DNA of 64,000 nucleotides from Auanema rhodensis (lineage: Eukaryota > Animalia > Nematoda), in NCBI GenBank assembly GCA_964057225.1, contig OZ059898.1, positions 8,432,001-8,496,000 of the forward strand, in the 5' to 3' direction. The position numbers were made by a program, and so were the translations under genes. Numbering within the stretch: position 1 is the first letter of the stretch; each line of letters opens with the position of its first letter. The notes under the pieces are model-generated. The model had not been told where the DNA came from and did no database searches. It was given only the letters and a program-made list of their open reading frames with translations. This document shows, piece by piece, positions 11,178 to 38,625 of the stretch.

Positions 11178-14100
11178 AACTGGAAACATATTTTTACTTA
11201 CTAAGAAACAATAGTATTAAATAATTAATCAAGATCTTCAAATTTGAAAGAACTGGTCTTTAGATGAGCTGCTTAGGCATTTGGGACTGAGTTCTATTTG
11301 AAGAGTGGCACATTTGAGTTGGGGGGTGATGTGGGCTGGTAAATAGCGACAAGAATGAAAACAAAATAGTGCTTGTTAATTTTTCCAAAATACAAAATTA
11401 TTCTTTTTTTTTTCATATTTATTCGTATTATAAAATAAAATAAAAATCAGATTCATATTAACCACGAGGAGGTGGTGGAGTGTAAAGGAAAACAGATAAT
11501 TTCGATTGATTGTAAGTTAAACATAGCATTATCATATGTTCGCAGCGGTTATATGAAGAACCTGACGTAAATCAACATAAATACAAAAATTTGTTCATTT
11601 ATGACTTTTTGTGGGTTGCCTACAAGGTAGATAACAATGTTGATTAGATTATTAACCATGTAAACTGCTGCTTCAAGCTGGTTGTTGGCAAAGCATGTAA
11701 TTATTGAACTTAAGCTGTCCGCGATAACGCAGCTGCAGCTTTGTGGTCTTTCGAAAGGAAGCGAACACGAGACTAAGCTCAACCAGTGGAAATAAATGGC
11801 AGGAAACCAGCTTAGGTTGTTCTTTAGCCAGAAATAGGACAAAATTTATAAATGACAACGAAGTTATGCTGTGTTTCCAAATATATAAGGAAGACACTCT
11901 AGATAGTTATATGAATCGCATATGCTGCAGCTGTCAATACACGTACATATAGCTATATGAAACAGCAGGAGCATCAACAAGAGAGAAGAATAAATAGCAA
12001 CAGCTGAAAGCTGGAAAGGACACTAACTGGAAGCCTTAAATGGACTTATCCCAGCAGGGATTTCACTCCCGCCCCGAGTCATTAGATGCTGAATAGCCGT
12101 CCAAATGTTGTAAATAGGAAAGACAAAAATCGAAGGTGTAAACAAATCGTACAGGTATTGTTACTTTGACTCCATAGTGAAGAACTGTATGGTTTTGTGT
12201 TATTGGTTTAGAAATTGAATGTAAACGCTAATATGTTAGGATAAAACACACAGAGATATGCGAATGTGATGGTCACGACATCTTTCACTACAACATACCG
12301 ATAAATAGCTTATCAGCTATTGACAAAAACTATAGATGATAGAAAAAGAAGGTATACTGAGCAATTTGCCGTTTTATCTAGTGTCATCATTCATCATTCA
12401 TTGTGAGTTCATTCATAGAGGAACAGCATGAGAACAAATATAATAATATTCTATTTTTTTACTATTGTGTAGAAGTGAGTATAATTTTACAAGAAAAAAA
12501 GATAAATGAAAGACGTGATTGAAATCAAATGTGTAAGGAAGCAGCTGGAAGACCATCTGGTCAATTTACTAAATTCCATCTTCTTGTTCCGTTGAGAATT
12601 CAGATTTTTTAGATTCATGATAACATAAAAAAAACTTTATTGAAATTTTTTTTGTGATATTTGAGATAAAGCTAGTAATATTAACAGTTTAAAATATGAT
12701 ACATTAACGTGCGAAAACTGAAAAGAAAGAAAGACGAGAAGATGGTACGTAAAGCGCAACAGCTTAAATCAGCAGAAATGAATCATCGCGAAATGCGGTT
12801 TGTGCAAAGGCTGCCATGAAAAGAACCCTATATGACGAGAGGTGCTATGCGTCTTTCCAAATAGACACAAATCAACGAAACAAAAAAAAACCACGTGGAA
12901 AAATCAAGCAAAAAGATCACAGCTTTTTCTTAGAGTTAATCTTTGGTGAAGAGTTGATTGCAAGATATGCTATGATGATACAAGTGATGGTGGCGGAGGG
13001 TCGATCGGCATCTGAGATGTTTGGACGGTGTGGGAAAATTCTGTCATCTGAATGGAGCGAGAGTCTCAGATCTACATGTTGACTTTGCCGACAACAGAAG
13101 ATAAAAAAGATGAAGAAGAAATAAAAAGAAAAAAGGAAGGAAAATCGACCATCAGTACTCAAGCATTAGTTGCTAGAAGACATTTCGACGTCTTTTTGGC
13201 TGGTAGGAGTGAGAAACGTTTGCTGCAGTCGGTCTGAGACTGTATAGGATGAACAAGGCAGTCTATTGGAGACATAGAACGAAAAAACGAGAACTGTCAA
13301 TAGCAAGAGGTTGCCATTCAAAAAAAGGTGCGTAGAAGGACATTGTCACCAATACCGGGAGGATGTTGAATGCTATTCATCCATACTGCATAAACATCAA
13401 ATAGGATATAGGGAAGCAATGAGACACAAGACAGAGAGGGTCTATATAGCTAGGCAACCTTTCTCACTGAGCCAGCTAATTGTAAAACCTCTCCTTCTCT
13501 TGCTTCTGCTTACCTTCAAGCTTGCTGTAGCTGCTGGGCGTGAAATAGCAAAACTGACCGAAATGTGACACCGTTGACATAAGCATTATACAAACATGGG
13601 CGCAGCATTTTACGAATAAGGAATAGCAGTGACTTGAGTGATTGGTTCAGATGACTACATTTAATAAAATCAATTTTTAATGTTATTCGGTATTGTATAA
13701 ACATCTAAGAATTTAGGGCGTGATAAAACAACGAATAACAGAAGCAGGAACAAAATGAAAAGAGCAGATGAGGCAAAAAAGAGAAGGGAGAGGCCCGCCC
13801 TTTATCCATCAAACAATCTCTCAGCGCTGCACATAATAATAAAATGATTTCTTTGTCAGCAAACAATTGAATATGCTTGAAAATTTATAATAAGCATGAC
13901 TTACCCCAGAAGGTTAGCAACTTTTTTAGTGGTCGGGGAAACAATTTGACGTAGCTATTTAGACGACATGTCCAGTCTTTCGTGAAACAGCTATACGTTC
14001 AACTTGCGGCAAATCGTTCAGGTTAGCTAGCAGTTGCAGACCACGTTGACGAGACAACTGTTAGATTAGGCAAAGATCCAAGAAGCTTTAGGCCATTCAT

Positions 14101-23929: not shown

Positions 23930-25464
23930 ATGCGTAAAATAAAGCCGTATATCGTGTTCGCCATATTTGGCCTAGTATTATTGGTTTATTTATGGTCATC
24001 GAGGTTTGATAATTTCTTGTTTTTCAATATTTAAATATACTTTTCAGTGGGGAAGAAGTCTATCCAATGCCTCAACGGGCCAATAGACACGAACGAAAAT
24101 TGGTGACATCCAACGATAAAAATTATACTTACGATAGAGAATCTCCTTTTATATTTATTGGTAGGCTTAAGAAGCTTCACTTACAAATTTGCATATGTTT
24201 CAAGGCGGTGTCCCACGTTCCGGAACAACGTTAATGAGAGCTATGCTGGATGCACATCCTGATGTAAGATGTGGTGAGGAAACGCGAGTAATTCCTCGTA
24301 TTCTCGGTTTGCGAGCACAATGGAAGAAAAGCGAAAAGGTTAGGACAACACATTTATTTTCATTACCAAATTGTTTAAGGAGTGGAATCGCCTTAATCTA
24401 GCAGGTGTCACAAACGAAGTTCTTTCAAATGCAATTAGTTCTTTTATTATTGACGTATGTTAGATATTACTATCTCGATAATCGAATTTGGTTGTAGATT
24501 ATGGCTGGACATGGAACACCAGCACCTAGGTTGTGTAACAAAGATCCTTTCACAATGAAAAGTGCTACATATCTATCGGAAATCTTTCCGAATGCCAAAT
24601 TCATACTTATGATTCGTGATGGCCGTGCTACAGTACATAGTATCATATCTCGCAAGGTTTAGTTTTGTTTATATATTATAGTAACTTGTGATTGATTAGA
24701 AATACAGCTATCAAAGCTAAAACCATAGGAGATTTTTTAGGTCACAATTACTGGCTTTGATCTCTCAGATTATGGGCAGTGTATGAGGAAGTGGAACGAT
24801 GCTATATCTATGATGTATGATCAATGTAATCAAATTGCTGATAGGTGTTTTAAGGTATTAAGAAAACTTTGTTACGTATTGCTTAGAGTTCAGAGTTTGT
24901 TCAGATGTATTATGAACAGTTAGTACTTCATCCCGAACAGGAACTCAGAAAACTACTCGAGTTTTTGGGTATTCCGTGGAATGATACTGTACTGCATCAT
25001 GAAGAACTTATCGGAAAAGATATTTCTCTCTCCAAAGTTGAAAGAAGTTCCGATCAGGTTTGAAATCTCTTTTCAATTTCTTCATCTTGAATTATATACA
25101 TTAGGTTGTTAAACCAGTCAATATGGATGCACTTAGTAAATGGGTGGGGCATTTACCGAGTGATGTTGTGAGTGCTATGGATACGGTGAGTGATTTACTG
25201 ATTTCATTTCAAATTTCAAAAAAAAAATGATTATAGGTTGCTCCAATGCTCCGTAGGCTAGGCTATGATCCTTATGCAAATCCACCCAATTATGGTTGGC
25301 TTCTATGATAAATTATGATACTATTTATCTATTTGTTTTCAGGAAAGCCCGATGAAATTGTGGCACAAAAAACCGACGATGTTCACAAAAATGGTCAAAT
25401 GTGGTATCAGCGGGGTGTCGAAGTTGTGAATGATCCAGCTCGAGTGGATAAACCATTTTTATAA
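23930..25464 (+). CDS. tpst-1: Tyrosylprotein sulfotransferase
   Basis: Type II anchor [22 protein letters not shown]; PAPS-binding motif [38 protein letters not shown]; LCNKDPFT; [16 protein letters not shown]; [10 protein letters not shown]; [16 protein letters not shown]; [15 protein letters not shown]. Confidence 0.96.
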
Positions 25465-25819
25465 AGTTGGATGTTCTGATATGACGGATCAGAATGTTTG
25501 AAAATAGCTGTTGTTGCCATTATCTGACTTTAATTAATTCTTGTCGACGTTTATTAATCCCCCTTTAAGCTCCAAGATGGGTGAAACTTTTTGAAACGAA
25601 TCAATCTTAAAAATTAAAGCTGCATAAAGCGAGATATTTGCGGGTGTACAAATTTTTATGTAAAGATACTATCGCCACCTTGTTTTCTGACCTAGTTGGC
25701 TGGGTTTTCTGCATCATATCACATATTGATGCTCTAGCATAATGCCCAGTTTTGGTTTTATTTTGGTGATTCTTCTGTGATGCTATTATTGAATTAATAA
25801 ATGTATATTTATATATTTC

Positions 25820-27381
25820 TTAATTGAGTCTTTTAATTGAATTCTCGTCTGCAACCGATTTAAAGAAGTTAATGCAGTTATCCAAGCTATAGTTGTTTCG
25901 AAGCATCTCATGTAGAGGTCCAATATGATTTTTAACATTTCGTCCATTTAATCGAGCTCGGTCAAGAAGTAAATTCTCATATATCGAAAATACATTGCTT
26001 GTCTGAAAGATTACAAGATAAATGATAGATAATCCAGCTATATCTAACCTCAATCGGATTTTTGTCAGCTTCTGCATAGATGGCATCATGATTTTTAAGA
26101 ATTGCTTTGTTTTCATCATTCAGAAAAGATATATCGGAACAATTAACTTCTAACTCCTAGAATATAATTAACATAATCAAAGATATGAATAACTAAGAAA
26201 AGCAAGTTTGAATTTAAAATTGAAAAAAAGGATATGTTAGAGATGATGCACAAGCACCAATGAAATAGACAAGATTGAACAAAAAGCAGCAAGAATATGT
26301 AATTGGAAACTTTCATTCTGAGATGAGCTAAAAACAAATTTAGAAACATTAGCTAGTATGCCACGTCAAAGGCAGCAAATACAGATTACTTTCAGCAAGT
26401 TAAATAGAGATCTTTTTAAAGAAACATTGACGTCATGCAGACGAAAAGAAATGCTGACTTTTGTACGGAAATGTGGTCAATCTCATTAAATCTAATGTAT
26501 TATACATTGTAAAAAATTTATCATAGAAAGTTTAGTTTGCAACCATAAAGTTAGAAAGTTTGTTGTTAGAATATAAATTATGCAAATTCCGTAAATATTA
26601 AAATAATATAAATCCAGAAAATACAACTTACTCGTAATGCTGTAGTAAGCATTTTACTTCTTTCAGTTTCCAATAATTTTGTTACTTGAGGATGAAGTAA
26701 ACGCAAACAATGGCTGATTGATTCTTCATTCAAATCTGCAAAAAAATTATAGTTAAATAGTATTTTTGTATTAGTATCAATGAAAAAAATAATAATTACG
26801 TAGATTATTCAATCAATAATTATATCATATAATTTTGAAAAAAACTAACCACATTGAATTTGAACACGTATCTGACTTTTCGTTGTTTCTGCACTGATTC
26901 GATCACGTATAATGGCAATCGTAGACATACTGTCTGAATGGAATACAACAGAGCCTCGTCTGAAAACATTCAACATAAATTTGTTGTGATTGCTGGATAA
27001 ATATATTGATACATACGAATATACTGCTTGTAATTGAGTACCACCATTAATACAGTTTTGCAGATTCAAGGTTACACTGTCAGTTGGTGGAGCTTTCAAT
27101 GGTATCTCGGGTATAAGCATAACTAGCCAAGCATGTGCTTCTGCCATTGTAAAGTTACCTGAAAGCTGATATTGCAACTTCTAAAAATTGTTTCCTTAAA
27201 AAACAAAAATTTATATTTATCTGCAGAAAATCTCTTTGTTGTTGAAAGTACATTTTACGTGAAAATCTGTATTACACGTGTTGTTAAATGCTACGTCTTT
27301 TCTCATCATTTTTCAAATCATATGAAGCTTAAAACGGTTGTAATAGTATTATTTCATTTTATATATAGTATATAGTATATA

Positions 27382-27448
<67 letters not shown>

Positions 27449-30400
27449 CCCTGCATATATGATTTTCCGGATATAAAAATACAATTTACATACTACTGTG
27501 CCTAATAAGCAGATGATCAACTAATGTTTACACAAATAATTTTTTTTAAAGTTAACATACCTGAAATCGAAAGAATATTCATCGGACGACTATTTTCAAT
27601 TTGGTGTACTCGAATATGAGCAGATAGCGGCTTAACTTCAAAAATACGAACCTGTAAACGAATCATTTAGTTTTTTAATCTCTTTTCCTATTTGATTTGT
27701 GTTTATATTTTATACTTTGTTTACAATATTTTTAAAAAATTTAATTGATTTTTACTTAATTTAATATTTTGATTAGTCAGAGGTGATCAGTGTTTAATCT
27801 TAAGAATTTGTTGACGTCACGAAAACTGACGTCAAAAAGATGCTGACACAGAAGTTGACAAAGTTGATTTTCAGGAAAAAGGTCAGATGGCTCGCTATAT
27901 CCGTTCGTCATGTTGAAGCAACTTCCGATAGTAGACTACACATCTGAATCATGGACTATTCGCATCAAATTTCGGTTGTATCTTCAGATCGCAAGACAAC
28001 ACCAGAATCTATAAAGATTAACGACATCTTTAACTTCTTTAAAATGTGGATGTAGTGACGTTGAAACAGAAGCTGAAAGTTTTGTTGTAGGCTAGCAGGA
28101 AGTATGAGCCTTTGTTGCTTAACATCATGGCGTCTCACGTAACGTGTGAGAGTCAGATACGAATACCAGAGAAAAATTCTGGAAGCACTTCGTTGACGAC
28201 AGAAACGAGAACCACGAATTCTGCCACAAAGGGAGGCTGGTCCTAAGCCCTGCCCCCTTTTGGCAAGCTCAAACCATTTCTATACAGCTTTTGACAGCCA
28301 GTCAGGTGGTTGAATCAAAGCTACAGCAGCTGCAATATCTATCAGCAACTTTTGTAAAGTTTGATTCTATTCGAGGCTCTTGTATCACCAGAGTCATCAT
28401 CATCAAGTATATTACGTCGATTTACTGTATTCTAGCTTCAAGATGCCTGCCGTCAAGCGATTGTTCAGCCTTATACTCGTTATCATTTTCATTATCTCAG
28501 TAACAGCATCGCCATTCTATGTATCGAGAACCTTCTATCCCACTCAGGTATACACTTATTTTTCCTCAAAAATAGAATTGGTTAAAAGAATATCCATAAC
28601 TGAACTAATGTTCTAAGTGTTTTTTAAATAAATTCTAATTTTTTCGATTTCTTTAATTTAGTTTTTTATATTATTTAACGAATAACAATTTTTTAAATTG
28701 CATTTTGAAACAGAGAAAATGAAGAGAGAGATAGTAGACGTGAAGAAACAAAAAAGGAAGAGAGAGGAACAGAGATTGAGGCAAAGAGAGATTGAGAGAT
28801 GGGAACTGAAAATAATTTAAATCCAAAGGTATACAAAGAAAGAAAAGTTCATTAAGCGTTCACATTTTTAGTCAAAGAAGAGTATTATAGGAAAGCCAAT
28901 TAGAGATGAATTATATAAATTAACTTGAGATTATTTTGTACTTAATTTGCACGTTTTTCATCTAATTTTCAAAATATATATAGTAAATGAACAATAGCAG
29001 AAGATATACAATTAAAGCTTTATTATTAACTATATAACTATTTATAAATATATATAAATAATATTATATATCTTATATAGTAGGTAGAAATAAGTATGAT
29101 AACTCCTTAATAATACTTAAATTTGTATTATAAAGTTATTACATTATTTTATTAAATATTTGACACTCCATGGCTATTGATATAATTAATTTTTATTTTA
29201 CTTTATTCATATTTTAATTTTTTTTTATAAACTGTAGAGTTATTGTGCGAGAAATTCTTAAATTCAATGAAAATTTAAAACATTTTCCTTATAAACCATT
29301 ACGAATAATCTTTTTCTTTAGTGGCATGGAGACAGTTTGTCTAAGAGAGCCTTAGATAAATGCGGATGCAACCTGGGATGCTTCTTCTCGTCAGCTCGTG
29401 AATGCATGAGTTGCTGTGCTTTGGCTCTACGTTGATGAATCAACTGTTCTCGTTTAATCGTCGTTTCGAATACCACAAACTAACTAAGTTACTTCTTTTT
29501 CTTTTTATATGTATACAACTGATAGATAGAAAAAGAATAAGAGAGAGAGAGTAAAAGAAAAAAGAAGAGAGAGAGAGAGAAAAAGAGAATCATTAGTCAA
29601 ATTAGATCTGGACTATATTACCTTCATGTGTTTTTAAAATATGTTTATTTACTTGATTGTATTTTATAATAATGTAAAAATATTATATTTTATAGTTAAA
29701 TATTCGTTCTGAATATCTAACTATAGAGCTTGAAAAAGGGGGGAAGATAAGAAGAGAGGAAGTGAATTGAAGGGTTATGATGAGAGCACCTATATGAGCA
29801 AATTATTTGTATAACATCTGTATGATATATGGTATGTTCGATGATGATATTAATGTTATTATATGATTAAGTAAATGAATATATCTATATCATATTGCTT
29901 TATTTTGTTGTTTATTTATTTATTTTTTGAATGTATAACTGTTTTTATCTTCTTAAATTTTGAAATAAAGAATATGAAACATACTTGGGCTGCCTTCGGA
30001 TGGATATTTGGACAGACGTAGACAACAATCTTGCCGAACATACCCTCTTCTACCTTCACTCGTAACTCTATTCGTGATGTCTTTGCCTGACATCTATAGG
30101 ATGCGAGCAATGGCCATGGATTCTGAATAATGCTTCAGGTACTATTATCAAGCTTGGATACGTGCTTACATGTTCTGATTGTGGCAGCTTACACACTACG
30201 GATGCGTTCTTTTCGACTTCAATCAGTTTTACTTTCAATGAACTCTGTAAATAATATTTTCGAATTATGTATAACCAAGCTTCTATTAAAGTTTGTATGA
30301 AATTTCAACTGACTTGTACGACTATGTAATCAATAGGCAAAACAAGTTCAATAGTCAAGGAATACGCTCCATATACTGCATTGAACTCAAACGAGTCATG

Positions 30401-32596
30401 AATCTAAATAATATTTCATTAGTAACCTTAATCATATATCGCAAAACTTGAAATGCAGGAAAGTAAGCACTTGCACCATCTTTCTGTGTTATTTCCGAGT
30501 ATTTTGCTCGTTCTTCCATAACCTTTATCTCCAAATCCTGTACTTCCGATCTGCAATATGCAACTATTCAATTTTTGTATTTTAATTATTAATGCTGTTG
30601 TATATTCATCATTGAAAAAAAGCGAAGAACAACAAAAAAGTCAACAAACCGTAGTTGATCCACCTTCACTTTCACATTAATAGCTGTTGGCATTGTAATT
30701 TTATCATTTGTTATACGTGTAGTGCTCAAAGAGAATAGCCAACCTATTATATAATAAAGTTTAATTTTAACTATATATATATATATATATTTCTTTATTT
30801 TGCAATATTATATATATGTATATATATACATATATTTAGACATACGCTTATCACTGTTGTCATATTGTTCTACAGATTTATACATCAGCAAAACAAAATC
30901 ATTTTTTCTTTACGAAATACTTGCTTGAACACGAATTTCGTGCGATTTTAGGAATCTGTCAGATATTTTTCTTCAATTATATTTTTGCCGATTTCGTTCT
31001 GTTTACTTTGTAGGCAACAAAAAAAATTCTGTTGGAGTTGAGATTTGAGATTGACTTCCTCAAATATTTTTTTGATATTAGCATGGCAATCAAAGGATAA
31101 ACGAAAAAAAATTATTTTGATTGTTATGAAAATGATATAAGAAAATGGAGAATGTGATTGTATAATACCTGTGTAAGTACAGACAATGATTTCATCACGA
31201 GTTTCATCACTCACACGTCCACACATTAGAGAAGTTATTGTTTCTTCTGAATTCTATAAATATAATTATTTATATATATAAATAAATAAATATTGATTTT
31301 TACATAGACACTACATAGAGTTACAGAATCTTCTTCATCAATCTTATATACTTCAACAACACCATCTTCTTTACCAATAATCAAATCACGCCGTTCTGGT
31401 GATAAAAATGGATAAAATGATGCTGCTGTTAAACCTTAAAATATTAAAAATTTCATTAAAAATAAAGATTAAGTTGTTATAATACATGATGATGTAGTTG
31501 TAGCTATTTGCCAAACAATTGTTCCATTTTCTGATGGCAGATCAACTAATCCAATATTTCCACCACGAGTTCCATACAAGACGCGTTGATTAGAGAAACC
31601 TGTAAATCAGATGATCCATATAAAATATACAATGATCAGCAGATAAAACCTCCATCTTCCATGAAAAGATGTAAAATCATGGGAATATCTGTTAATTGAA
31701 CTTCATAAGCTAACGTAGAACCTTCCAAAACCTGAATATAAATTTGAGATATACTTAATTATTATTATTTAAATAATACTTTTAAAGTAGAATCTCGACA
31801 AGCTAACACGGATGTAAATGAACGATCAGCCCATGCACCACCTGATTTATCAATTAAGCATACAACATCATTAATTTCTTCAGATGATAGGTAATACTAA
31901 AAATAAATAAAAAAGATTATTTATTATAATTATTTGTATATTTATATTTATGTATATAATATAAATTAAAATAAATATTTTTACTCACATTTGTATCTGC
32001 ACAATCATGGTAATGATTGAAGCTTTTAACTCCTGTTAATACAAGATCAACACCATAAATAAACCTTAATATAAATAATAATTAAATATGTATTAATTAA
32101 AAGAAAACTAACATGCTTTTAATGGTTTCTGCCATGTTTGTTTCAAAATTGAAAAACTGCTTCCCTTTCTTGCCCAATCCTCTAACGCTATTATCGGATG
32201 CAACAAATACCTTACAAGTTATATAATATTAATTAATAAAATAATAATTAAAAATAAAATTACATACCTTATTAGCTAATGTTCCAATTGATCCACCTAA
32301 ACATATACTGGTAATAGGTGGGCCAGGATTTGTTTTATAAACTATATGAGTATCATTTTGTTTTCGAATAACAGATATTACGCAACCATTTTGACCTCCA
32401 ACAACAACCTTTAAATTAAGAATATATATATATATATATATATGAAATATAATAAAATAATATAAAAACAAAATACCCGATCCGTTGATTTACCACGTTG
32501 ATTGATTGGAGCAGATGGTACAACACACATACATGATCTATTGGTTGTGCCTATTTGAGCAAAATCTGTTCGAAATAATTCCACCAAATTTGGCAT
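25820..32596 (-). CDS. osm-12: Bardet-Biedl syndrome 7 protein (BBS7), BBSome subunit; multi-exon
   Basis: MPNLVELFRTDFAQIGTTNRSCM...VVVGGQNG...DEIIVCTYTGWLF...LASYRCQAKTSRIELRVKVEEG...VRIFEVKPLSAHIRVH...GNFTMAEAHAWL...FHSDSMSTIAIIRD...LLLDRARLNGRN...NYSLDNCINFFK; upstream X-box. Confidence 0.93.
27383..27443. repeat. (TA)n microsatellite in a BBS7 intron
   Basis: About 30 perfect TA units, preceded by TATATAG units. Confidence 0.95.
27812..27834. promoter_or_regulatory. Tandem full CRE palindromes (TGACGTCA x2)
   Basis: TGACGTCA at 27812-27819 and 27827-27834, about 610-630 bp upstream of the nested peptide gene ATG. Confidence 0.55.
28443..29435 (+). CDS. Nested 72-aa secreted prepropeptide releasing a 6-Cys peptide (neuropeptide- or defence-peptide-like)
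   Basis: Exon 1 28443-28547 (MPAVKRLFSLILVIIFIISVTASPFYVSRTFYPTQ, donor CAG|GTATAC) and exon 2 29322-29435 (acceptor TTTTTCTTTAG; WHGDSLSKRALDKCGCNLGCFFSSARECMSCCALALR*), phase 0. Both exons are GC-richer islands within AT-rich intron DNA. Confidence 0.85.
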
Positions 32597-32767: not shown

Positions 32768-33538
32768 CGGAGGTTACTATAGTGTATAAACCAATGTGTA
32801 GTTATGTCGTAGCTGTCATTTCAAACATACTTCTTCCATAAAAGTCATTTCAAAAAAGTTTCATTTGTTCTGATTGGCATGAGTATTTAGTATATCAATA
32901 CTTCATCTTTATGTCATATTTTGCATATCATATGAAATAACAAAATCAGACAGATTTGTAAAAAAAATTGAGGTGAACTACCAAATAAAACTATTTTTAC
33001 TCCGCCTCTTCAATAGACAACTTCTTCTTTGTCTTTTTTTAAGTTAAAAAATGAACATTTTTCCTGTTTTTTTTTTAGAAAAAGTTCTTTTGAACTGAGC
33101 AATTCGATTTTCTCTAAATGTTGGTCCTTGCCCATCCTCTTTACTTGAACTTCTCTCCCACCCTTCTTTTACCTCTCCTTAAACTTAGTCTCCTTCTTCC
33201 TTTTTCTTTTTCTCTTCTTAACTTCCCTCATTTCACAAGCCTACCCTCTTATCCTATTTCCATTTCAGTTTTTTTTATTGAAGTAAAAATGAAAACAGCT
33301 TATAGACTGAAAGTAAAGAAAGTAATAGCTAGCTATTAAAGCCTAAGACAAATGATTTATGTTTCCATTCCATGAGATGAAACGAGTCTTCACAGAAGTC
33401 AAGACGGCGAGATGCTGCGGTCGTTGTCCACTCAACATTCATATATAATATTTTTGCTTCACCTTTATCATCAGAATCAAGTAATAACACATATGTATAT
33501 AGTTAAACAACATATGTCTTTTGATTTGAATAGTGTTC

Positions 33539-33543
<5 letters not shown>

Positions 33544-33585
<42 letters not shown>
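33544..33585. repeat. (CT)n microsatellite
   Basis: About 20 CT units seen directly. Confidence 0.9.
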
Positions 33586-33588
<3 letters not shown>

Positions 33589-36305
33589 TTCTTTCTTCTA
33601 AAAATTCTATAAAGTCATTTATCATGCTGTAATTCATTAAAAAAACTTTTCCTTTGCATTTCGTCTTTTTTTGGAACTAAAAGAAGAAAAATGAGCAGCT
33701 GACGAAAAGATATCCATTTTGCATAATTTCAAGTTGAAATTAAGAAAAACGTTTTTTTTAGTATTTGCAAGTCAACCAACACGTAACTAACATGTAGGAA
33801 ACTATCATTTTACTTTCAAACACTTCATTTCAATTTAATCTTTTCTTTTCTAAGTTACATGTATTCTTTTAACCTTTTTAACTTCAATTCCCTTGTTTCT
33901 TTCTTTCATTCTTTCTTCATTCTCCCATTAGATTTCATTTATTCTTTCAAATAGCATTCTGCAGCAGATCTCCCATGCATGCTTCCTTACTTTATTCTTC
34001 CTCTTATCCACCCTCTAGTTTAGATCTCTTCCCATATTTCTCTTCCTTACTCCTGAATATTTCAAATCATATTTCCTTTTACCTTTTTTTAGATAATACT
34101 CAGAATGATAGTCGATATACGTGTATATTTATAAGAATTATAATATAAAATAATAATTTACAATTAAAAAAATTATTATTTTTCATTTATACAAACATAA
34201 TACAATAGAATTTTATATTTTATTTATATAATAATAGATAATAAAAAATATAAAAAGAAATGATTATTTTTAAAAAAAAGTCTTCGACAATAGAAGTTTT
34301 AAGATGAAAAAACTCAGAAATTTGAAAAATAACAGAAAGGCAAGTAATACAGAAAGATTAAGATGAACATTGAAAAAACTAAATGTATGAAATAGTTTGG
34401 AAATTGAGAAGATATAAGATATATAAAGAATGAAAAAAGAAAAGAAAGAAAGAACGAACGAACGAACGAACGAACGAAAAAGGAAAAGAGATCGAATAAA
34501 GTAAGCTTTTTGCCTTTCAATAGAACAGCATTTTTTTTTCTTGTTGAACCCATCATGTTAGTTCTACATATACATATAAGTATATAATAGATTTCTTGAC
34601 TATGTATATTCATATATACACATAGTATATATACATATAGATATACATATATAGATAGTATATTTATTTTTTTTTAAATATATTCATATACTATATATTG
34701 ATTAATATTATATAATTAATATAATTAATGAATCATTTTATATAATAACTATATGTATTATACTATTTAACTTAAGTTAATTCTTATTAATAAACAAATA
34801 TTCTTCTTATTTATCAATATGCTTCTTAGATGGATACAACACCAGTCTCAGCATATTATATACATACATATATCATATATAGATGTTACGTTCTCAATAT
34901 GTAAGTACGAAATTTGAATGAAATTCCATTACAATCCGTCGGATGAACGAAGCTTCAAAGCAACTACGTCATTCAGCCCATGTTACTTGGCTGCTGCTTT
35001 TGCTACTTCAAGGAAAAGCATCACGATCTGCAGTACGACACAAACTTATTAGATGATTGTGGATTAAGATCTATTATAACGTCGAAGAGCAAAAAAAAAT
35101 TTTTTTTTCTCCTTCTTCCATGCTTCATCTTCATCAAAATCCACAATCCATTGTATTCCTTCACTTCGTTTATCTCATTGTCATCACCTCTTTTCCAGAC
35201 TGGCTACTTCATTCTTTTCTTCTACTTCTTCAGCTACTCCTTTTTCTTCTCATCATACTGCACCACCTCCTCAGTTTCCTAATCATTCTTGCTTAATTTC
35301 AATTTCACTTGCAGTTTCTGTTTCAGCTTCGATTTCTCTGAAACGAATATAAAGAGATGAAGTAGGCCTTCTTTCCTATTATTATTTAAATATATATAAA
35401 TGGTATAACATCTGTTTATTATATATAATATAAACAACAAAATAAATCTAAAAAAAGGTAATTCATATGTACATATGTATGTATATCTACGTATGTATCT
35501 ACGTATGTATGTATGTTACTCACATTTTTTTGTTAAAAACACATACAAACATACTAAGTGTGATTTAAATATTTCACTTGCATTTCTGTTTATTTTAATT
35601 TTAAGAATTATTGACAGCTTTACTGGTTGCATTTCATAAATTTTGTGTTCCTTAGTTTCGGTTGAAGACCAACTTTTTCTAAATCAGCATTTTTTGTTAG
35701 CTTTTTAAACAAATTTTCAGCATTTTTCATTAATTCTTAAAAGAAATATTCAATATTTCATATTAAATCTGAATGATATATTATTATTATTAATTGAAAA
35801 TTACTTTAAAGAATTATAAACGATTCACTATACAGTTATATTATTATTATTATTATTGTATTTTAATATAAATTATATACTATATTTGAATATATTTTAA
35901 AATATTTATTATTTAAAGCTTTTGTGTATATGTGTGTGCCTTTTCACTATCTTTAACTATATTTTAACGTGACAAGGATGTATTTCTAAACAACCTCATG
36001 AAGACCTTAATGAGGTAAATGAGCATATTCGGCTCTTTAATTGACGTCCATGCCATGGTCCTGTTGAGCTCTGCGGCTCTCTATAGCTGCACACAGAAAT
36101 CGAGCATACAGCTTTTTCAAAAGTGAACTTGAGCGTTTTCCGGTCTTTTTTTGTGCCCATTGAATTATCATGATTTTTTCCCTTTCCTTAGTATTGCAAA
36201 AAGGTAAAGCTGATTTCTAAAAGTTCTCAATGCAAAAGAAATTCTGACGTCGATGTAGAGAAATGTTGATATCCGGTATAACCTCTTCTAGAACTTTCTA
36301 AGTCG

Positions 36306-36308
<3 letters not shown>

Positions 36309-36353
<45 letters not shown>

Positions 36354-36607
36354 CTCTCTCTTCAATCTTTCACATATATTCTCTCATTAGTACACTTATA
36401 TCCATATTTCACTTGATAATGGATGTTAAAGGTGTCCTTCATCTCATCCAATACTAAATATTTCCGATGGTTAACATCTCATTCACATCAAATTTTTATA
36501 AAATATCTTCAAAAGATTTTTTTTATTATATTTCTAAAAACATTGTCATTTTGTGTCCCAGGAGAAATCTTTCTTCTGTACTTATTGATATCGAAAATGA
36601 GACTTTG

Positions 36608-36671
<64 letters not shown>
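36309..36671. repeat. (CT)n at 36309-36346 and (GA)n at 36621-36671 microsatellites
   Basis: Seen directly; complementary tracts about 275 bp apart. Confidence 0.9.
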
Positions 36672-36676
<5 letters not shown>

Positions 36677-37328
36677 AAAAAAAAGCGAAAGAGAAAAGAA
36701 GAAAATTTTCGGGTAAAATTTTAGTTAAAAAGTACTAGAGACGAACATGTGATATTGACTTGTTTTGTCTGTTTTTTAAAAGCTTAAAGCATAATGTTTT
36801 TCTATTTTAGCTTAGAAAACTGCCAGTTAAAACTCACAGTCAACTTGTCCATCTATATTATTTTAGATTTTAGTTCATGTGAGCTTTATTTTACTATAAT
36901 ACTGATGAAGAAAATCATGGTTTCTAATATTAAATATTTGAAATAAAAAGATTTTTTTCTCTGAAAAACAAGTATAATACTATTACTTCAATGTAAAATT
37001 TATCATAATTATGTCTTCTTTACTATTGATTAGTTCACACATAGATTAGATGAATGTATGCATTTCTAACTGCCACAATCTGATTTCATATTCTTTTCAT
37101 TCATAAATCTCATAAGTTTTCAAGTTGAAATAGAGAAAAAAAGAATTTAAAACTAGAAAGGAACCTTTTTTTTGTAAAAAAACTTTTTTCTCTATATATC
37201 TTTGGATTTATTGATGTTATACTCACACTTGTAGCATACTTCTTCACTTAAGTGCTCACAATCATTTAACGATAGAAAGATGAATGAAACAAAAATAAAA
37301 GAAGAGTTAGAGAGAGACAGATCTTTAC

Positions 37329-37332
<4 letters not shown>

Positions 37333-37410
<78 letters not shown>
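37333..37410. repeat. Two (GA)n tracts, each preceded by AGATCTTTACA (local duplication)
   Basis: agatctttacaaaa(ga)n followed by agatctttaca(ga)n. Confidence 0.85.
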
Positions 37411-37412
<2 letters not shown>

Positions 37413-38625
37413 TTAACCATAAACTATTCGTTTGATTTAAAGTAAAAACTATTTTTTGTGTTTTTTCTTTATCCATTTGTAACTGATCTAATTACAGAAA
37501 CAAGTATGAAAGAGATATACATAGATGTTTTCAATCATCACCTCATGTTTGAAGAAAATGGAGACGAAGAAAGAGACATCTATCCTCCTTTCATCATTCA
37601 AATATTTTTTTTCCTTATTTTTCAATTTACTATACAAGAGGATATATATACATATAATAGAAAGAAGACATATATTTTAAATATTCTGTCATTCAAAAGG
37701 TTTTAAAAAACTTATTTCTGGCGTCCATCATAGTATTTCTCTCTTTTCCAACATTGTCTTTTTCTTTTTCTTTCTTTTTTCATTGATACCTTAAAATGAC
37801 TTGATCTCTTCACACAGAACAGCCATTTGACTTTTAAATAATTTTTCTTCAGATTTTACTTCCAAAGTTTTAAGTTTTCATGTCTTAGTACGCCTAAGGC
37901 ATTTTTCTCTTTTTCTCCTTCTTAACTATACTTTTCTACTTTTTCACCTCTCTATCTACCTCTTCAACTTATATACTCTTTTCAAATTTTCTTTATATAT
38001 GTGTTCATTCTCACTCTCCTATCCTATCTTTCATGGCTTTTACTGGTATTGCTCACGCTTGAATTAACTCTATTCTTTTGTGGTCAAACATCTCAAGGGT
38101 TACGTCAAGAAAAGTTAGTTTATTTTCTTATGATTTATTCCATTTATATAGTAAATTCTACTATATACTACTCATAAATATAATTTTACTTAATGTTTAT
38201 TATATAATAATTTCTTCTTCTTTTTCTTCTACTTCTTCTTCTTCTTTCTATACACTGTGTTCTTCAAAAATAACAATTTTCATTATGTCTTTTTCTCTCA
38301 TTTTCACTTTCTCTTCAGCTGCTTCTTGAATAAACATATACAAGCTTTTTACTACCTTCTGTCCATAATTTCACAGCTGAAGTTTTATGAAACATATGTT
38401 TTTTTATTTTTTCGTTTTTTTAACTTTTTAAGTCTGAACTTTGTTTCTGCTTATTTGAAAAAAAACAAAATATAAGAATATTCGTATATTTTATATTATA
38501 ATACAATCAAATTTTTTTTATAAAATTTCTTTTTTTTCTATTATTATCTCTATTTTTTTTAATTTATATAATTTTATTTGAAGTTATTCTTTTATTATTT
38601 AGAAACATTTTGAAGTATGTGACCG

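Follow-up and report, generated by a model that had tools for sequence, protein, structure and literature searches.

A six-cysteine peptide precursor gene antisense in a BBS7 intron and its relatives across nematodes

A signal peptide, a dibasic site and a C-terminal peptide together form a precursor layout that is cut by convertases and trimmed by carboxypeptidase E, a route documented in C. elegans for EGL-3/KPC-1 and EGL-21. For that species, the lists of neuropeptides (flp, nlp, ins and others) are regarded as near complete. Insulin-like peptides consist of B and A chains, with CC-x3-C-x8-C in the A chain; hepcidins, which are hormones as well as antimicrobials and which, to our knowledge, are known from vertebrates only, have eight Cys in a pattern other than the one reported here and a beta-hairpin fold; conotoxins of the O1 superfamily have the framework C-C-CC-C-C; and the cystine-stabilised helix motif combines C-x-C with a helical C-x3-C. 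Antimicrobial peptides typically show fast turnover and copy-number change. Trissin is about 27-29 aa long, carries six Cys with three predicted disulfides, is non-amidated and ends in CC plus four residues, and its spacing in decapods is C-x2-C-x3-C-x3-C-x7-CC (PMC8449533, PMC7212414).

Here we describe a gene in the window, the whole 64-kb stretch of nematode DNA that was analysed, for whose product trissin is the nearest known peptide in kind, yet with a different Cys spacing. Judged from its sequence, 28443-29435 is a protein-coding gene that is absent from the annotation and orthologous to C. elegans Y75B8A.44. We think it likely that it encodes a convertase-processed, secreted signalling peptide with three predicted disulfides from an undescribed family. 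The family is new among the well-known genes for prohormone-type precursors, and one member already exists as a bare gene model in C. elegans.

Gene model and family members

The gene has two exons on the strand opposite to its host, the cilia gene BBS7, with the following features.

28443-28547, + strand: exon 1, with the start codon, the signal peptide and the first 13 pro-region residues (SPFYV...PTQ); donor CAG/gtatac
28548-29321, + strand: peptide-gene intron, 774 nt, AT-rich, phase 0
29322-29435, + strand: exon 2, acceptor ttctttag/TGG, with the pro-region end WHGDSLS, KR, the mature peptide and the stop
29343-29348, + strand: dibasic site K43-R44, from the translation of exon 2
29349-29432, + strand: mature-peptide coding sequence, ALDKCGCNLGCFFSSARECMSCCALAL plus a terminal R
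29433-29435, + strand: stop codon TGA at the end of exon 2

The 35 codons of exon 1, counted from the ATG at 28443, and the 37 codons of exon 2 join in phase 0 into a 72-aa precursor with a basic and hydrophobic N-terminus (MPAVKR followed by LFSLILVIIFIISVTA). Its signal peptide, judged by eye, spans M1-A22, with a basic n-region (K5, R6), a hydrophobic core and V and A at -3 and -1 of the predicted cleavage site VTA/SP. Residues 23-42 form a 20-aa spacer that leads to K43-R44, and residues 45-72 form a 28-aa C-terminal peptide, ALDKCGCNLGCFFSSARECMSCCALALR, in which six Cys are spaced C-x-C-x3-C-x7-C-x2-CC and the first Cys lies four residues after KR. Across all six reading frames of the window this Cys pattern appears a single time, and 200 block shuffles never produced it; a chance ORF is ruled out by the E-values of the homologs. 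The original prediction, that two phase-0 antisense exons form a real gene for a 72-aa product, is thus upheld by sequence, translation and homology, and the layout that it described (signal peptide, KR and a C-terminal Cys-rich part) recurs as a conserved feature throughout the family alignment.

Searches with the 72-aa product matched five Caenorhabditis proteins with E-values of 6e-15 to 2.4e-13 (from C. nigoni, C. tropicalis, C. remanei, C. elegans, where the match is Y75B8A.44, and C. sp. 36). These are nearly identical to the window peptide from SKR to the C-terminus and share with the window product the motif [HS]PF[FY]V after the signal peptide. When 1.84 billion representatives were searched exhaustively with a profile at E up to 0.001, 25 matches came back, with E from 5e-30 to 7e-4, and 21 of them are true members; P0007, P0008, P0012 and P0015 were rejected as repeat proteins that match the profile by composition. 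The true members are precursors of 67-240 aa with the same Cys-rich motif, which is C-terminal in all of them except P0023. Further members came from a second profile search, and the profile searches together added about 20 to the first Caenorhabditis set. Members with species names come from nematodes of clades III, IV and V and from Plectus, about 20 nematode species, including the following.

Caenorhabditis japonica, Bursaphelenchus xylophilus, B. okinawaensis, Aphelenchoides bicaudatus, Steinernema carpocapsae, S. glaseri
Globodera pallida, G. rostochiensis, Panagrolaimus, Rhabditophanes, Gnathostoma spinigerum
Toxocara canis, Ascaris lumbricoides, Plectus sambesii

Every member that carries a species name belongs to Nematoda, several others come from run or metagenome assemblies, and our searches gave one member per named species. 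In databases the members are called 'uncharacterized protein', 'Secreted protein' or, automatically, 'Conotoxin', in line with the earlier expectation that homologs might already exist as hypothetical proteins of an uncharacterised family, for which we found no record in Pfam, the PDB or the literature. Literature searches by the gene name Y75B8A.44 and by core motifs found no paper, though the supplements of the two main neuropeptide resources may list the gene. Likewise, the literature searched gave no peptidomic, expression or genetic data on any family member. Exact-product look-ups of the 72-aa product, of a 93-aa upstream-start variant and of the 69-aa C. elegans short form gave no record. 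The gene can therefore be called hidden, as first proposed, with regard to the present genome, for which no annotated member turned up, but not with regard to nematodes, given the C. elegans model.

The family core reads K[RK]-x(1-6)-CGCxxGC-x7-CxxCC-x4 and forms the precursor C-terminus in most members. CGC, the G and C of xxGC, the following C and the final CC are invariant in the 25-member alignment, the Phe after the third Cys is nearly so, and the K and the R that stand 1-6 residues ahead of the first Cys each occur in >90% of the 25 members. The window peptide carries every invariant column. A single basic residue after the last hydrophobic residue is found in some species (window, Globodera, Plectus) and is absent from others; its presence may vary because carboxypeptidase trimming would make it irrelevant.

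Three precursors from run or metagenome contigs (P0032, P0034 and P0035; L006) hold two copies of the motif. The first copy, C-x-C-x3-C-x7/9-C-x2-CC, directly follows the signal peptide and ends in KR, and the second lies further along and is followed by an acidic tail. These sequences may come from early-branching nematodes or from another phylum, and they are relevant to the origin of the family.

Genomic setting and selection

The gene had been predicted to lie antisense in a 2333-nt intron of BBS7, and both the intron ends and the matches to bbs-7 exons confirm this. A translated comparison of 25270-32572 (- strand) with C. elegans gave about twenty collinear BBS7 exon matches.

27652-29984, - strand: host intron of the BBS7 (bbs-7/osm-12) ortholog, 2333 nt, with gtatgt and tttacag ends
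27553-27663, - strand: flanking BBS7 exon, matching C. elegans bbs-7 at L001 8915-9025
29982-30122, - strand: flanking BBS7 exon, matching C. elegans bbs-7 at L001 13234-13374

Y75B8A.44 (L001 10001-12425) lies inside and opposite a C. elegans gene whose product has four BBS7 Pfam domains, and it is bracketed by the two matching bbs-7 exons. Since the exons that flank the window intron match those around Y75B8A.44, both peptide genes reside in the same bbs-7 intron, and their likeness thus covers precursor layout, Cys core, intron position and antisense nesting. Synteny inside bbs-7 introns had been put forward as a check, and nesting was found in distant nematode groups.

B. xylophilus: peptide gene antisense, within the BBS7 model
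S. carpocapsae and C. remanei: peptide gene antisense, with one half of a split BBS7 model on either side
T. canis: peptide gene antisense, between BBS7 exons at L004 202-450 and an N-terminal model from 13454
GC-rich organism, contig L002: intronless peptide ORF, next to BBS7 exons on the other strand

It should be noted that a nested gene can hardly leave its host gene without damaging it, and the arrangement may therefore be conserved without need of a functional link to BBS7. Contig L002 (1-1139, 60% GC) holds a very compact nested pair, with the peptide gene about 100 nt from the opposite-strand BBS7 exons; its reading as a spliced transcript (P0009) was rejected, as these exons point to genomic-like sequence and an intronless gene. 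A weak BBS7-like match in L007 failed on re-examination. The public BBS7 models of T. canis (L004), S. carpocapsae (L005) and C. remanei (L008) are split or truncated exactly at the long intron that bears the peptide gene.

Upstream of the gene, one short element is shared with Caenorhabditis.

28241-28262, + strand: GC-box-like element TCCTAAGCCCTGCCCCCTTTTG, 202 nt before the ATG, 20 of 22 bases identical to C. elegans

The element is unique both in the window locus and in the C. elegans locus (L001 10014-10035), and its core AAGCCCCGCCCCC also precedes the C. remanei ATG, by 89 nt. In the window, C. elegans and C. remanei (L008 5912-5933) this 22-nt element has the core AAGCCC[CT]GCCCC followed by a T run, 80-200 nt upstream of the ATG, and it is likely a promoter or 5'UTR element. 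In C. elegans the conserved element (AAGCCCCGCCCC) falls within a 31-aa N-terminal extension of the annotated 100-aa Y75B8A.44 model. Because this extension overlaps a conserved non-coding element and is missing from the other Caenorhabditis models, we doubt the annotated start; the extension probably does not contain the real one, and the model looks over-extended.

Base composition also changes before the ATG, with 40-48% GC over the 600 nt of 27850-28440 against 17-25% in the remaining host intron, which fits a promoter/5'UTR block better than plain intron. About 620 nt upstream of the ATG, the perfect CRE-type palindrome TGACGTCA occurs twice, at 27812-27819 and 27827-27834, at a distance of 15 nt. 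By a rough count, the AT-rich 64-kb window has three such palindromes where about 0.5 would be expected. None was found upstream of the peptide gene in the C. elegans, Steinernema and Toxocara loci, and B. xylophilus has a single one about 2.3 kb upstream. An Rfam search of the intron on either side of 29031-29073 returned no RNA family. Long GA/AG-rich simple repeats (agagag/aaaga) occur at 29520-29590, 33530-33640, 36280-36680 and 37330-37460, and such repeats give many spurious translated matches to a repeat in the Y75B8A.44 intron (L001 about 11650-12090).

Within the 23-residue Cys core, the window protein and Y75B8A.44 differ at two positions; outside it, the window protein has an extra C-terminal Arg, and signal peptide and spacer are divergent. 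The homolog search suggested at the outset thus found what it had looked for, conserved Cys and KR beside a divergent spacer. Nei-Gojobori counts over the 23 codons of the core gave the following proportions.

Window versus C. elegans: pS 0.53, pN 0.06
Remaining pairs among the window, C. elegans, B. xylophilus, T. canis, S. carpocapsae and L002: pS 0.53-1.14, pN 0.12-0.28

The Cys core is under purifying selection: its synonymous sites are saturated, and free divergence of the DNA has brought little change to the peptide. The intron of the peptide gene, in phase 0 and seven codons before KR, is placed identically in the window and in the two-exon Y75B8A.44 of C. elegans; S. carpocapsae has it at the window's position, and in B. 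xylophilus and T. canis the pro-region is interrupted close to this point.

These data bear on whether the gene still works in the window species. It could be a silent relic, conserved by descent and no longer expressed, or its splice model could be wrong, and a called gene with this product is indeed missing from the record. Such a reading is very improbable, as the frame, start, KR, six Cys and stop are all intact and canonical splice sites sit at the ancestral intron position. A relic would also be at odds with the low pN against C. elegans (0.06 at a pS of 0.53), with the conserved upstream element and with the read data: four small runs, all from a single study, with 16-18 million letters and RNA as their guessed type, each contain 0.38 of the words of 28300-29600, a share close to the ~0.37 expected of exons plus UTRs without the 774-nt intron, which matches mRNA as a hint and not as proof.

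Comparison with known peptide families

No known family accommodates the peptide. Pfam and NCBIfam gave no match for the members searched, a sequence search of the PDB and a Foldseek search of the model against the PDB returned nothing, and a VIA structure search of 48,161 chains gave a best Z of 2.3 and no structural neighbour. Three members bear the automatic UniRef label of the Conotoxin O1 superfamily; as Pfam and NCBIfam are without a match (none at E up to 10 for the labelled members searched), the name is unsupported, and the framework here is C-C-C-C-CC. Insulin-like peptides were rejected because Pfam gave no match and the mature part here is a single 27-aa peptide. The initial statement that neither insulin-like peptides nor ABF/defensins match the locus agrees with the lack of a Pfam match to either.

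Endothelin/sarafotoxin and apamin resemble the window peptide in having a C-x-C element together with a C-x3-C on a helix, but they have four Cys against six here and are unrelated in sequence and taxa. By analogy with the cystine-stabilised helix, the partners here would be C49-x-C51 and, on the predicted C-terminal helix, C64-x3-C68.

The hepcidins lead to a different view of function, in which the product is a defence peptide, hepcidin-like or defensin-like in use, that damages microbes and does not signal. It is small, Cys-rich and presumably secreted, and would be freed from a pro-form by a dibasic cut, as in hepcidins, with which it shares a signal peptide, a pro-region, a basic convertase site and a short C-terminal Cys-rich peptide. 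Hepcidin-like clusters were nearest in an ESM feature search (0.87), a lead only, in which the likeness lies in the precursor layout, and predicted helminth sets of AMP-like sequences consist mostly of Cys-rich peptides (PMC10414684). Hepcidin membership itself was rejected, with six Cys here and no match to Pfam PF06446; nor did Pfam match the defensin and ABF families, and the motif is missing from the supplementary lists of the helminth AMP screen (PMC10414684). Moreover, the mature family peptides, as counted from the alignments, have a net charge of 0 to -2 and are not cationic, one member was found per named species, and the core hardly varies among clades III-V and Plectus (pN 0.06-0.28 at saturated pS). 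We therefore consider a role in defence unlikely; given charge, single copy and near-invariant sequence, a receptor ligand is the better fit.

In a narrower version of the signalling reading, nematodes would have the equivalent of trissin that they have long seemed to lack: this peptide, acting as the ligand of the orphan receptors NPR-20/NPR-21. The trissin-like receptors of C. elegans are orphans and a nematode ortholog of trissin has not been found (PMC7615250, PMC11538413), and NPR-20/21 belong to an old nematode lineage (PMC11315170). Trissin and the window peptide share a length of about 27 aa, six Cys, the lack of amidation and an end of CC-x4 with a hydrophobic tail, and the two-copy precursors described above place their first copy where trissin has its own. 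Against this stand the spacing, C-x2-C-x3-C-x3-C-x7-CC versus C-x-C-x3-C-x7-C-x2-CC, and the precursor layout, in which trissin directly follows the signal peptide of a 100-200 aa precursor whereas the window peptide is C-terminal after KR. An hhalign comparison of the family profile with crab trissin gave a probability of 1.6%, and the exhaustive profile search had no arthropod trissin among its matches. On these grounds membership in the trissin family was rejected, in agreement with the first reading of the locus, whose statement that the spacing does not match trissin holds against decapod sequences; we also consider a nematode equivalent of trissin, or a link to NPR-20/NPR-21, unlikely.

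Proposed processing and biological meaning

Based on our findings, we favour a secreted signalling peptide, for which we propose the following course. The signal peptide would route the 72-aa precursor into the secretory pathway and be removed after A22, and three disulfides would form in the peptide. A proprotein convertase of the C. elegans EGL-3/KPC-1 type would cut after K43-R44 and a carboxypeptidase E-type enzyme (EGL-21 type) would take off the terminal Arg. No amidation is expected, since no Gly precedes the basic residue, and the product would be an uncharged, non-amidated peptide of 27 aa ending in -CCALAL. This peptide may then bind a specific, conserved receptor.

With 25 sequences, AlphaFold (AF2) reached a pLDDT of 72-80 over the mature part, a middling confidence (57 with 6 sequences), and placed a helix at A25-L36 of the exon-2 peptide, carrying the C-x2-CC segment. 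The combination of an N-terminal C-x-C with a C-x3-C on the predicted helix suggests a cystine-stabilised C-terminal helix and, by analogy, the disulfide pairs C1-C4, C2-C6 and C3-C5.

The near-invariance of the peptide across Chromadorea points to binding of a conserved receptor, and therefore to a hormone-like or neuropeptide-like signal over an antimicrobial one. We speculate, as a long shot, that nematodes share an unrecognised hormone system, in which a 27-aa ligand with three disulfides has been kept near-unchanged inside bbs-7 since before clades III, IV and V and Plectida split.

Gene prediction misses genes of this type, as the window genome illustrates with no annotated member, and retention in one BBS7 intron offers a simple positional rule for locating the gene in any nematode genome. 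Reviews point out that conserved peptide receptors are still without ligands (PMC7615250, PMC11538413). The family spans free-living, plant-parasitic and animal-parasitic nematodes with an almost fixed mature sequence and is without a name; a nematode peptide of this kind is therefore a synthesisable candidate for receptor deorphanisation, for which Y75B8A.44 provides a ready genetic handle in C. elegans.
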